From Pelomyxa schiedti (lineage: Eukaryota > Protista > Evosea): a DNA stretch of 43,288 nucleotides. Under the pieces are notes generated by a model that saw only the letters and a list, made by a program, of their open reading frames with translations, was not told the origin of the DNA and did no database searches. The stretch covers positions 1-43,288 of the forward strand of contig JAHLWZ010000932.1 of assembly GCA_020536535.1 (NCBI GenBank), read 5' to 3'. The position numbers were made by a program, and so were the translations under genes. Every line of letters begins with the position of its first letter. Within the stretch, counting starts at the first letter, position 1. Positions 18,579 to 23,952 of the stretch are shown one piece after another.

Positions 18579-19653
18579 ATGTGTTTCGATCAGAAGACGT
18601 CGGCTTTGTTTGCTGGGATAGGTTCGTGTAGTTATCACTTTGGCGGCGCCAGTATTCGTTTTCGTTCAAGGTTAGTAAACGTCAACAGGTCTGGCGGTGA
18701 CGTATGTGGCCTATCGCAAGGAACGCAACTCGAAGAACGGATTTGGTGTCACTATTGGGTCAGCCTACTTCTTTGCGATGGAGTTCCTACAGGTCGTGGA
18801 CCCCTTTGTTCGCACACTCACTAACACGATTATGTACAGTTCATTCAATATTTCTGGATTGATGAGTGCGAGAATCATATTAACAAAGTTCTTACCGTCG
18901 TTGGATATATGCATATCTGCTTCCAGCCCTTTTTCGCTCATCTCATGACTTACTCACTTTCATACAACGAAAATACCCGAGCACAGATCAGAGCAGTCAT
19001 GGCGTAAGTACTTCATTCTTCCATAGTACATTTGAATAACCACTATTATGAAAGAATGTGTGTTGGTGGCGGGGTTATACTCTTTTCGCGGTACCTGATG
19101 TCCCCATGGGCGCATGTACTGCGTACGCATCTCCCCACCTAGGAATCCTACTTACTGATTTCTTTTTTTTTCTTACTACTTAGCAAGTGCCGACAGGCCA
19201 AGCACTGAATGGCTAGCTTCTGATGGATCTCTTTGTACCTACAGTGGAAACCGACATTTGGCTTGGGCAGTTCCACTTTACGAGGTAATGAAACACCGCA
19301 AAGTCTGGTAATTTACTTCTTTAGGCCACTTACTTCGTTCCTGGGACGGCCATCCATTCCTACATGATGTTTATGCCATACTTTGTTATCAGGCCACCCA
19401 AAATGTGGATTCTTGGCTTCTTTTTGCTAATGAGCGGCCCAGTTCTTGCCTCATGTACCGCTTGACAGAACATTTCCATCACTAATACACCCCTTTAGAT
19501 ATTACTGACAACCTTCAAGAGCAAGCCAGCATTTGGTGCTTCATGTCTGTTATACAGGTCGCGGTGATGGTTTTCCTGATCTCCAAGAACCAAATTGAAC
19601 GCAAGTCCCCCAAAGAGCAGAGCATTACTGACAAAAGCTACAAGTGCTCTTAA
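18579..19653 (+). CDS. Multi-pass membrane protein, DUF5765-like
   Basis: Starts MCFDQKTS. Motifs YFFAMEFLQFIQY, HICFQP, LCTYSGNRHLAW and EQASIWCF, with several hydrophobic segments. The family was recognised from memory of its motif pattern. Confidence 0.7.
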
Positions 19654-19964
19654 GCAGCAAGTACCCCAAGGTTCCTTTTTGAAAAAAAAAAAAAAACATC
19701 AACATAGGCAAACGAAATGAAACATCAAAACGGGAGGAACCTTCCGTGTCTCAAAAGAACATTACTTCTCGGAGAAGTCACCGGGATTTCATACCAAATT
19801 AATCGTTAAGAGACAACATCGCAAATAAGACTCGGTACCCGTCCAATTTTTAAAGGTCGTTTTTGTACAAATCAAAAAAAAAAAAAACCTCAACAACAAG
19901 GTTGTTGGTCCTTCCCCTCATCCGTTTTGAATTATAACCTAGTACACATCACCCAGATCTCCAC

Positions 19965-22570
19965 ATGGACACAGCAGCACAACGCATTTCACGCCTCTGC
20001 GGTCATTTGGGCATCTCCCCTGAACTCTGTGGTAGCAGCGTGGGTGATGACGTTGCGCTAATCCGCGGTCTGTGTGCCGATCCGTCGCACTGGGAAAAGC
20101 TGGCCGCTTTGCGCAACTCCCGCATTTTCAAGGTACTTTCAATCTCCACCTCCCTCGCTGCATTTCATGGTTTGTGATCACGCTTTGTTTTTCAGGTTGT
20201 AGCTTTATGCGTGAGGATGATGTGCCCTAAAGATATAGTTGTCGTTGATGACTCCAAGGTAATTTGTGCTTGAAATTGTTCTTACTTTTGTACTGAGTAA
20301 TTGTGTAGGCCGATGAAAGCATGGTAGCTCAGCAGTCCATACTGCGTCACGAGGAGGCAAATTTGGCTACTCCAGGGCACACTATTCATTACGATGGAAT
20401 TGAGGATCAAGGGAGGGATGTCGGAAGAACAGCTACTCTTCTTCCTTCTGGGCAAACGTTGTCCCAAGGCTTGAACGTTGCTGAGAGGGAATCGGGCCTG
20501 GCACGAGTGTGTTCATCGTTCCTCCTAACACCAACTAATCTCTGTCGTTAAAGATGTTTGAATTGATGCAAGGAGTAATGAGGGGAAAGACAATGATAGT
20601 GTGCTTCTTTGCTATGGGGCCACTCGCGTCGGAGTTCACTGTTTTCGCTCTTCAGATTACAGACTCATTCTACGTTGCACATTCAGAGCTCATTCTGGTA
20701 GAAATTAAAAAAAAAAAAGGAAACTGCCTTTCTAACTCTTAGATGTAGTACCGAAATGGATATGCCGACTTTAAGGCTCGCTGCCCAGATGACTTCATGT
20801 ACTTTGTACACTCCGCTGGTGAGCTCGACGAACGATTTACCAGTAAAAATGCGCACAAGAGACTCGTATACATTGATCCACTGGAAAACAGGTTTCCTTC
20901 TTGTAGTAACCAAGTATTAATTTGTGCAGAGTGTTCACTGTTAACAACCAATATGCTGGGAATAGCCTTGCTTGCAAGAAATTGGCCCTCCGACTTGCCA
21001 TCTACAAAGCAAATCACTCAGATTGGCTTGCTGAGGTAAATATCCCCTGTCCCAATTTTCATCACTAAGGTTCTCTAGCACATGTTCCTGAGTGGATATT
21101 CCCCTCTGAAAGGTGGAAGAATTACCTACTTCGCCGGTGCCTATCCAAGCGCTTGTGGAAAAACGGCAACAGCCATGTTACCGGGATCTTCTATTGTTGG
21201 AGATGATATCCTTTACGCACGAAAGGGACCACAGGTAAATAATCTGCAGTTACCAGTCCCTTAACAGAGGTTTCCTTTTTCAGGGTGAAATGCGAGCGGT
21301 TAACATTGAGAAGGGAATATTTGGCATTATCAGAGACGTCAACACAAACGATGACCCTCTTATTTACCAAGCACTTGTGACACCCCGGGAAGTTATTTTC
21401 AGCAATGTGTTAGTAGGGGACGATGGCAAGACTTACTGGGAAGGATGCGGGCACCCTACGCCAACTGTATGAAACAGTTTTATTGTCCTCTTTGACACTT
21501 CAAAAGGAAGGATTCAACCACGTGGGACGATGGAAGAAAGGCATGAAAGATGACAAGGGGAAGCCAATCCCCATATCACACCCCAACTCTCGTTTCACTC
21601 TTGGCCTGGACGCCCTCTCTAATGTGGATCCTCATCTTCACGACCCAAAGGTGGGTTTCGCTTTTTGGCAGAAAACTAAATAGTTTTAGGGTGTAGAGAT
21701 TCAAGCAATCCTTTATGGTGGCAGAGATAGCAATGACACAGTTCCTGTAGCTGAAGCGTTCAGCTGGAACCATGGTATGCGGCACTGTCCCTCCCTCCCA
21801 GGCTTACATTTTGTTCAGGAGTAGTGATTGGTGCTACTATAGAGTCAGAAACAACAGCAGCGACAATTGGCAAAGTAGGTGTCCGCACACCATCCCCGTT
21901 CTCTAACATGGACTTCATGATTGGTTGTTCCCCTTCTCAAAGAAAAACCGAAAGTCTGACATTTTATTCAGTTCCTCTTTCTATGTACATCAAGAACCAC
22001 TTCAAGTTTGGCAAATCTCTTGCTCGCCTACCAAGAGTATGTAATTTCCATGGTGACTACCCCTGACAGTATATAGATTTTCTCCACCAATTACTTCCTG
22101 AGATCCCCAACTACCGGTAAATTCCTCAATGGGAAACTGGATAAGAGGGTACGTTTTTCACCATTCCTTTTGAGACTAAAGTTGGGGACAGGTCTGGGTA
22201 CTGTGGGCAGAGGGCCGCGTCCACAATGAATATGGTGGCCTACGGACACCCGTTGGTGTTATACCCCTTTATGAGGACCTCGTTGCGCTCTTTGCTGGAG
22301 TTTTCCCAACACGCGCTCCATACACCCGTGCCGAGTATGACGAGCAGTTTAGTATCCGCGTGGACAATCTCCTTGCCAAGTATGACCGGATGGCTGTGAT
22401 GTATTCTAGGGTCAGTAGCCAGTACTCACAAAGTCCCAACTGACAATTCCCAGGAGAGTGACATGCCCCCAGTATTCTTTGAAATCATGGGCGCTATCGT
22501 GGCCGAGCTCAAAGCACTTCGCGTGAAGACCGGCGCCGCTGTTCTTCCTCCTTCTGCCTTCCAGTCCTAA
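19965..22570 (+). CDS. pckG: Phosphoenolpyruvate carboxykinase (GTP), archaeal/Giardia-type, with N-terminal PTS2
   Basis: Motifs [31 protein letters not shown], kinase-1a [15 protein letters not shown], kinase-2 [30 protein letters not shown] and ESETTAA. Many short introns; stop at 22568-22570. Confidence 0.95.
19983..20009 (+). other. Peroxisomal targeting signal type 2 nonapeptide RISRLCGHL in PEPCK
   Basis: Residues 7-15 match R-[LIVQ]-x5-[HQ]-[LA] with a hydrophobic position 5, within an N-terminal extension ahead of the catalytic domain. Confidence 0.75.
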
Positions 22571-22637
22571 AGGGGTTCCCTTTGTTTGTTCAAGAAAAAA
22601 GCAAGCTTTTGTTTTGAATCCACTTGTTTGTCGGGTC

Positions 22638-23952
22638 TCAGAAGAAGCAAATGACTTGCCTTGTGGCCTTTCCTTCCCTGAGCCTGTCCAGAGCCACGTT
22701 GATGTCAGACAGTTGGATTTTGTGGGACAGCAGCTTGTTTACAGGGAGTCTGCCCTGCTTGTACAATTGGACATACCTCGGGATATCGCGGGAAGGCACG
22801 CAGGACCCGATGTAGCTCCCTTTGAGGGTCCTTTCCTCCCCGACCAGTTGTGCAATTGGTATGGCAAGAGTGGAGGACGGTGGGGGAAGGCCTCCTGTGA
22901 TTGTGGTGCCACCACGGCGTGTGACCTTATAGGCTATTTCCAAGGCGGCAGGAGAACCAGCCATTTCTAGGGCAAAGTCCACACCTCCGGAGGTGGCTGC
23001 GCGGACATCGGCTACGCACGTTGGAGACGTGGCATTAAATGTGTCTGTAGCGCCTAATTCACGTGCTCTTTGGAGCTTTGATAAAGTAAGACAGAGGAAA
23101 AAGTAGGGTGAAATTAACCTTCTCTTCAGAAATATCTATTGCAACGACTCTAGAGGCTCCGGCGGAAACGGCAGCAATCAGCGAAGCCTGGCCGACGCCT
23201 CCAATCCCTACAATCGCCACAGTTTGTCCCAAGCGAACTGCCGCTGTATTTACGACAGCTCCAACTCCAGTCAAGACAGCACATCCAAATAACGCAGCAT
23301 CCACAAGTGGAACAGCGGGATCAATTTTAACGACGGACTTCCGGGACATAACGGCATACCTTGGAGAAGTAGAGAAGTCAGTGACATATTTTCCAGGAAC
23401 AGTATAACTTACTGTGCAAAAGCAGACACCCCAATATGGTGGTTAATATCGGATCCATCTGCCGCATGGAGCCTTTTTTCGCCACAGAGCAGCGTGCCAG
23501 AAACGTTAGCGGAAGCGCCAGGTTCACACAAAGCCGGTCTTCCCTCGGAGCAAGGCCCGCAGCACCCACAGCTAGGAACAAAGACAGTGACAACGTGGTC
23601 GCCAGGAACCAAGTCGGTGACACCCTCGCCCACCTGTTCCACGATTCCAGCTGATTCATGCCCCAACAACATTGGCGGTGGTCTGGGCCTGTCTCCCTAA
23701 AAAAAAAAAATTGTCGGCCACGGTTTAAAAAAAGTTTACCAAAACCGTGAAGGAAAACAGGCGTACGTTAACGACGGATAAGTCGGAGTGGCAGAGGCCG
23801 GCGGCAGCCACTTTGACCAGGACCTCGCCCCTCTTTGGGGGATCGATGGTAACGGTTTCAATTGTCAGGGGTAGTGACTCGGCGTAGGGCGTGGTGCATC
23901 CCTGCCTTCGGTACACCGCACCAAGGCACTTGATTGCGGAAGACGCCATCAT
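22638..23952 (-). CDS. adh: Zinc-dependent alcohol dehydrogenase (MDR family), probably NAD-dependent, bacterial-like; 4 exons
   Basis: GLCHSD, GHE, structural Zn motif [22 protein letters not shown], Rossmann GIGGVG with acidic AID, and GSYIGS. Confidence 0.95.

Follow-up and report, generated by a model that had tools for sequence, protein, structure and literature searches.

A PTS2-like N-terminal Signal on a GTP-type Phosphoenolpyruvate Carboxykinase of Pelomyxa schiedti: a Candidate Cargo of Anaerobic Peroxisomes

Anaerobic peroxisomes are a recent discovery, and what they do is for the most part obscure. A gene of the archamoeba Pelomyxa schiedti raises the question of whether a phosphoenolpyruvate carboxykinase (PEPCK) is delivered to such an organelle. 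The gene lies on contig JAHLWZ010000932.1 of assembly GCA_020536535.1, and the stretch analyzed here, referred to as the window, comprises positions 1 to 43,288 of the forward strand of that contig. At 19965-22570 on the same strand the window encodes a protein of the GTP-dependent PEPCK family whose N terminus carries a close match to the type 2 peroxisomal targeting signal (PTS2). The evidence moderately favors the view that this PEPCK is a credible, previously unlisted candidate for a PTS2 cargo, whose targeting would depend on the receptor PEX7. If this is true, it would be, to our knowledge, the first known peroxisomal PEPCK outside Euglenozoa, and it would belong to an enzyme family different from that of the glycosomal enzyme.

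Results

Two definitions of a PTS2 were applied, a strict consensus (R/K-[LVIQ]-x-x-[LVIHQ]-[LSGAK]-x-[HQ]-[LAF] within the first ~30 residues) and a loose form (R[LIV]x5HL). The nonapeptide RISRLCGHL of the window protein agrees with the loose form and with the five helix-face positions of the signal but escapes the strict expression because its position 6 is Cys, which lies outside the set [LSGAK]; its GHL ending is one that we take to resemble mammalian PTS2 signals. The preliminary description of this DNA had noted a close match of the type R-I-x5-H-L at the N terminus, within an extension that precedes the core of the enzyme, and both observations hold. The nonapeptide is at residues 7-15, and AlphaFold predicts a helix at residues 4-14 that spans it. 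Homologues from Asgard archaea, Chloroflexi, and Anaeramoeba begin ~32 residues later in an alignment (A4), and residues 1-33 are therefore regarded as a lineage-specific extension; the predicted local distance difference test score (pLDDT) is low over residues 1-20 (averages of 54 and 53 for residues 1-10 and 11-20, respectively), is 78 for residues 21-30, and exceeds 94 from residue 31 onward. Neither the loose nor the strict motif occurs anywhere in 148 of 148 full-length homologues, so that the pattern match is unique among 149 proteins of the family. Cys22, farther along the extension, is a possible PTS2-processing site, to which little weight is given; in plants and mammals, PTS2 cleavage sites with a Cys at P2 have been described (PMC3830196), and the proteins listed for P. 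schiedti include a peroxisomal processing peptidase, Pelo_9536.

The nonapeptide is conserved in the single orthologue (one of one) whose N terminus could be recovered, a comparison for which the preliminary description had called. This close orthologue is encoded on a 350-kb eukaryotic contig from an ENA metagenome (L008:3928-6318) and is 70-97% identical to the window protein across the core exons, with ~38% identity over the rest of exon 1. Its N terminus consists of Met and four further residues followed by RVNNLAGHL (residues 6-14), which satisfies the strict consensus at every position and keeps the R, I/V, L, H, and L of the helix face together with Gly7 of the nonapeptide. By a rough estimate, drift at the rate of the flanking sequence would leave all five helix-face positions intact ~3% of the time, and the conservation of the motif is therefore considered meaningful, albeit in a small sample. 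The protein of Mastigella eilhardi (P0224) is 74% identical to the window protein but is 5'-truncated and starts at an internal Met, and two other loci (L009 and L010) are also 5'-truncated. A word search with residues 1-143 gave zero matches and hence no third N terminus, and the metagenome matches to a 59-residue query, with identities of 61-75%, included no pelomyxid and are taken to be prokaryotic relatives. Some intron positions are common to the window gene and the L008 gene, but introns 7/8, 9/10, 13/14, and 14/15 are missing from the latter, in which exon 7 is interrupted by an additional intron; the two loci show no synteny outside the PEPCK gene.

The gene has 15 coding exons and specifies a protein of 655 residues. 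Its 14 coding introns are all of the GT-AG type and 38-63 nt in length, and every coding splice joint is reproduced in single-cell RNA-seq contigs from the same organism; the genome-derived translation is identical to P0166, an open reading frame (ORF) that comes from an independent call on an RNA contig of 2380 nt. The RNA also reveals two introns in the 5'-untranslated region (UTR), at 19662-19707 and 19856-19956, and 19957 is thus the first position of the exon that contains the ATG. After splicing, the mRNA has an in-frame TAA 18 codons before the ATG at 19965, with zero ATG in between, and the possibility that upstream exons extend the PEPCK ORF was rejected because of this stop. A start at the downstream in-frame ATG, codon 64, is disfavored because the near-invariant family positions K45 and N51 of the N-terminal core would be lost. 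It is extremely improbable that the N terminus is an artefact of annotation or assembly and that the true protein starts elsewhere. Such an artefact would find room in a leader that is long, spliced, and rich in upstream ORFs (uORFs), and whose 5' end the contigs cannot define, but it is difficult to reconcile with the identical 655-residue protein from the independent call on RNA, with the upstream stop and the core residues that a start at codon 64 would cost, and with the L008 orthologue, which shows the same start architecture. The ATG at 19965, for which the preliminary description had looked to RNA-seq, is thus supported by the RNA joints, the upstream stop, and P0166, with the transcription start left unfixed by the contigs, and the N-terminal sequence MDTAAQ followed by RISRLCGHL is confirmed as real so far as sequence data can tell. 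At the other end the protein terminates in FQS, and a type 1 peroxisomal targeting signal (PTS1) is absent.

For comparisons of the enzyme, a joined translation was built from window coordinates for local use, exons were searched singly, and full-length searches were made with P0166. The assignment to GTP-PEPCK in the preliminary description is borne out: Pfam scans of the individual exons gave PEPCK_N and then PEPCK_GTP in the correct order, P0166 contains PF17297 and PF00821, and the best PDB matches, with E values that reach 3e-71, are GTP-PEPCKs without exception. The P-loop CGKT and the GDD, HPNSRF, and GGR motifs align with those of chicken mitochondrial PEPCK (2faf) and are near-invariant columns among 40 homologues; the AlphaFold model, from a 40-sequence alignment, has a mean pLDDT of 92.7. 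On these grounds the window protein is a member of the GTP-PEPCK family with an intact set of catalytic motifs. In the alignment to 2faf, its subfamily differs from the canonical enzymes in one stretch, which is said to be guanine-binding in canonical PEPCKs.

Over the whole core the protein is 55-62% identical to proteins of Lokiarchaeota, Promethearchaeota, and Anaerolineae. In a quick maximum-likelihood tree of the eukaryotic copies (P0166, P0224, P0139, P0222, P0105, and P0007) with Asgard and Chloroflexi proteins, Pelomyxa and Mastigella group with two Anaeramoeba species and a Logan/JGI pair (SH-aLRT 98%), and the eukaryotic clade sits inside the Asgard/Chloroflexi assemblage; its origin could lie in gene transfer among anaerobes or in an older event. 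The Asgard/Chloroflexi-type GTP-PEPCKs, including the related proteins of Anaeramoeba, have both Pfam domains and the motifs in common with the window copy but differ in their later start and in having no PTS2. A separate member of the subfamily, P0002 (1073 residues, from a JGI metagenome), has ~460 N-terminal residues that are aminotransferase-like by reading, fused to a complete PEPCK, and shares 58% identity with the window protein across exon 14; this fusion protein is presumably prokaryotic.

P. schiedti has a second GTP-PEPCK, of the canonical type and with few introns, at G000:C53:64078-66430 on contig C53 (loci L001, L002, and L095). The N terminus of this paralogue, ~40 residues in which Ala, Val, Ser, and Arg abound and acidic residues are absent, looks like a presequence of the type that directs proteins to mitochondria or mitochondrion-related organelles (MROs). 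The protein does not appear in the searchable text of the published MRO list. The extension of the window PEPCK does not have the basic, hydroxylated, acid-free character of an MRO presequence: residues 1-36 contain three Lys or Arg and four Asp or Glu, a net charge of -1, and position 2 is Asp.

Thirteen peroxins, including the PTS2 receptor Pex7 (Pelo_8985), have been reported for the P. schiedti assembly (PMC8887013). The PEX7 gene was relocated at G000:C702 with a short degenerate pattern, and a six-frame reading shows all of its exons; one of four such patterns matched, and six-frame reading attributes two of the failures to an intron that splits the peptide. The best natural PDB match of this gene is the yeast PTS2 receptor, 3w15_A. 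PEX7 is thus present in the genome, and its absence, which would have been fatal to the proposal of the preliminary description, does not apply; the accompanying statement that anaerobic peroxisomes occur in Archamoebae is also in order, as P. schiedti is an archamoeba for which such organelles and PEX7 have been published. The organelles are without catalase and β-oxidation.

The matrix proteome of these peroxisomes has been predicted by Zahonova et al. 2022 (PMC8887013), who listed 67 candidates and five PTS2 entries, with the pattern R[LI]x5HL as the criterion. Although the prediction concerns the same organism, assembly, and PEX set, and the window PEPCK fits the pattern, the enzyme is missing from the 67 candidates and the five PTS2 entries, and the word "carboxykinase" is found nowhere in the supplement; the published gene model of the PEPCK presumably has a different 5' end. 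PEPCK is also unmentioned in a later paper on Pelomyxa metabolism, an MRO comparison, and a paper on Entamoeba peroxisomes with its supplements. The authors describe the P. schiedti list as lacking a clear biochemical context, and the organelle has been considered to contain the only D-lactate dehydrogenase (D-LDH) and a myo-inositol dehydrogenase; PTS1 cargo was assayed by them as mCherry fusions in yeast.

Other enzymes of carbon metabolism give a mixed picture. A class II fructose-bisphosphate aldolase paralogue (L104, G000:C769:32693-35911, reverse strand) has an extension of ~35 residues in which RVEAVERHL occupies residues 7-15, as the nonapeptide of the PEPCK does, ahead of a Thr-rich linker, whereas its sister (L102, G000:C171:171213-174782) starts directly at the catalytic domain and has no extension. 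Both aldolases are outside the published PTS2 list, and the absence of the PEPCK and of the extended aldolase from it points to under-annotation of the PTS2 cargoes in P. schiedti. A targeting extension is absent from the single TPI, which ends in AKH, and from the only match to the GAPDH N-domain; PTS1-like ends have been published for GPI and MPI. The only MDH (Pelo_1515) is predicted to be MRO-targeted. Its presequence (L099, G000:C124:14937-18134, reverse strand) contains, at residues 6-14, RVSVVSSHV, a near-PTS2 whose final residue is Val instead of Leu; Cys-Cys follows, and the enzyme may be dually targeted.

Discussion

The loose motif is not significant by itself because ~9 of 19,876 proteins would be expected, from amino acid composition, to have it within the first ~32 residues by chance; the weight of the PTS2 case comes from conservation and context and not from the motif. 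This expectation and several other considerations count against PEX7-dependent targeting of the PEPCK. The five published PTS2 candidates are ankyrin, kinase, and GAP proteins and look like chance matches, and Cys, at position 6 of the window nonapeptide, is not among the commonest residues there. Outside the motif, exon 1 is likewise conserved at the ~38% level, retention of the motif being only ~30-fold above drift by the rough estimate, and the conservation rests on two sequences because only one orthologue N terminus was recovered. The leader in the RNA contig, with a length of at least 352 nt, contains three uORFs of 36, 28, and 30 codons, and contigs cannot fix the transcription start. 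It should also be noted that GTP specificity is inferred from family membership only and that MDH and AAT, the obvious partners for oxaloacetate, are published as MRO-targeted.

The PEPCK could alternatively be cytosolic, with a nonapeptide that is fortuitous or unused and an extension that serves regulation, oligomerisation, or stability. This is a serious alternative, although clearly the less probable one. A cytosolic enzyme would sit well with the number of chance matches expected in the proteome and the fortuitous appearance of the five published entries, with conservation that extends over the whole extension beyond the motif, and with the Cys in the nonapeptide; also, no other cytosolic PEPCK is evident, because the paralogue on contig C53 carries a presequence. 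It would not lead one to expect that the L008 orthologue keeps the helix-face positions and Gly7 in a nonapeptide that fits the strict consensus, that the motif is absent from the 148 homologues, that its spacing from the initiator Met is the classic one and it falls in an exposed helix predicted with low confidence, or that PEX7 is retained in the genome.

Localization in the MRO, with the extension as a cryptic signal, appears very unlikely. The PEPCK would in that case feed oxaloacetate to a branch comprising MDH, fumarase, and complex II; the MRO of P. schiedti is predicted to convert oxaloacetate to succinate and needs a source of oxaloacetate, and the signals for this organelle in Archamoebae are sometimes brief and of unusual form. 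However, acidic residues outnumber basic ones in residues 1-36, with Asp at position 2, the N terminus of the L008 orthologue is likewise not basic, and the C53 paralogue with its textbook presequence is the better MRO candidate. Mitochondrial GTP-PEPCK (PEPCK-M) belongs to the same family; the C53 copy is of this canonical kind, with a presequence-like N terminus, whereas the window copy represents a divergent subfamily with an acidic N terminus that bears the PTS2-like nonapeptide. The two N termini fit a pair of PEPCKs with different addresses.

The window protein resembles classical PTS2 cargoes such as thiolase, the MDH and citrate synthase of plant glyoxysomes, PhyH, and AGPS, which have R-[LIV]-x2-[LIV]-x2-H-L within the first ~20 residues in an extension that looks cleavable, with a downstream Cys at the processing sites of plants and mammals. 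The differences lie in the cargo, as PEPCK would be new to the PTS2 route, and in the destination, an organelle that has neither catalase nor β-oxidation. In the mechanism envisaged for PEX7-dependent targeting, an expressed GTP-PEPCK gene of the Asgard/Chloroflexi type would have gained an extension of ~32 residues in the pelomyxid lineage, with the PTS2 at positions 7-15. PEX7 would bind the exposed N-terminal helix in the cytosol, the folded PEPCK would enter the catalase-free anaerobic peroxisome by way of the PEX13/PEX14 docking machinery, and trimming of the presequence might follow, close to the conserved Cys22. Within the organelle the enzyme would convert PEP, CO2, and GDP to oxaloacetate and GTP, and the peroxisome would thereby obtain a source of nucleotide triphosphate and a pool of oxaloacetate. 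Recognition by PEX7, import, and processing are all inferred, as are the reaction's direction and its role in metabolism.

The proposed role has a parallel in the glycosomal PEPCK of kinetoplastids, which also acts on PEP and oxaloacetate in an organelle derived from peroxisomes, where it contributes to the regeneration of nucleotide triphosphate and provides oxaloacetate for the reoxidation of NADH. The glycosomal enzyme, in contrast, is of the unrelated ATP-dependent family and is one of a full set of imported glycolytic enzymes, whereas the window enzyme is of the GTP family and has an N-terminal PTS2-like signal. The preliminary description had proposed a glycosome-like PEP/oxaloacetate node, and only part of this stands: PTS2-like signals are present on the PEPCK and one aldolase, but TPI and GAPDH have no extension and MDH has only a near-PTS2. 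Compartmentalized glycolysis is not supported, because TPI and GAPDH are without a signal and MDH is published as MRO-targeted, but a partial peroxisomal set for carbon metabolism is possible, because one aldolase paralogue has a PTS2-like extension. A tentative extension of this idea, which is speculative and rather unlikely as a whole, is a small PEX7-imported module of GTP-PEPCK and class II aldolase, possibly with a dually targeted MDH, that would act as a GTP source and an oxaloacetate/malate redox sink. Such a module would be built in part from prokaryote-type enzymes and would be a partial, independent parallel to the glycosomal PEPCK branch, with PTS2 cargo having been under-counted through mis-annotated first exons.

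If the proposal is true, a PEX7-imported PEPCK would provide anaerobic peroxisomes with a definite reaction, one that yields GTP and oxaloacetate, and would connect these organelles to the principal carbon flow of fermentation. Redox balance and nucleotide supply inside a peroxisome that holds D-LDH and myo-inositol dehydrogenase are questions that such an enzyme could address. The novelty would lie in a PEPCK of the GTP family addressed by PTS2, in place of the ATP-type enzyme of glycosomes.

Additional Features of the Locus

The coordinates of the gene and of the elements in its N-terminal region are collected in Table 1.

Table 1. Positions in the window of the exons and N-terminal elements of the PEPCK gene
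Feature	Start	End	Strand	Evidence
5'-UTR exon	19466	19661	+	RNA contig X1 record 1; upstream limit is the contig start only
5'-UTR exon with 30-codon uORF and in-frame TAA before main ATG	19708	19855	+	RNA contigs
Coding exon 1, start codon 19965-19967	19957	20132	+	Joint 19855/19957 in RNA; P0166 starts here
N-terminal extension, residues ~1-33	19965	20063	+	Alignment A4, AlphaFold
PTS2-like nonapeptide RISRLCGHL, residues 7-15	19983	20009	+	Direct reading of sequence
Cys22, seven residues after nonapeptide, kept in L008 orthologue	20028	20030	+	Pairwise alignment
Coding exon 2	20196	20258	+	GT-AG introns, RNA joints
Coding exon 3 (PEPCK_N)	20309	20506	+	Pfam, GT-AG introns, RNA joints
Coding exon 4 (PEPCK_N)	20554	20697	+	Pfam, GT-AG introns, RNA joints
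Coding exon 5	20749	20891	+	GT-AG introns, RNA joints
Coding exon 6 (end of PEPCK_N)	20930	21035	+	Pfam, GT-AG introns, RNA joints
Coding exon 7 (PEPCK_GTP start; P-loop Cys-Gly-Lys-Thr 21154-21165)	21079	21234	+	Pfam, RNA, alignments
Coding exon 8	21284	21466	+	Pfam, GT-AG introns, RNA joints
Coding exon 9	21507	21650	+	Pfam, GT-AG introns, RNA joints
Coding exon 10	21690	21774	+	Pfam, GT-AG introns, RNA joints
Coding exon 11	21819	21923	+	GT-AG introns, RNA joints
Coding exon 12	21972	22036	+	GT-AG introns, RNA joints
Coding exon 13	22077	22148	+	GT-AG introns, RNA joints
Coding exon 14	22192	22410	+	Pfam, GT-AG introns, RNA joints
Coding exon 15 and 3' UTR; stop codon 22568-22570	22454	22618	+	GT-AG introns, RNA joints

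In RNA contig X1 record 1, 196 nt precede position 19708, the consensus of loose ends fits the window at ~19632-19661, and a donor GT is present at 19662. A separate, deeper RNA contig covers the upstream part alone of the leader region at 19466-19964, and an independent upstream transcript is possible.

The poly(A) site of the PEPCK gene is near 22618, after which 12 A's form a loose contig end. A convergent, intron-containing gene occupies 22611-23672 on the reverse strand; its ORF fragments resemble a Zn-dependent alcohol dehydrogenase (by reading, with no family scan), and its product ends in CFF and is thus without PTS1. The last ORF of this gene ends at 22638, which leaves ~20 nt to the poly(A) site of the PEPCK gene, and an RNA contig that starts at 22611 suggests that the 3' UTRs of the two genes overlap.

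At position 22266 the genome has C and four of four RNA runs have T, a synonymous difference in the third position of a Pro codon that is probably allelic or a feature of the assembly.

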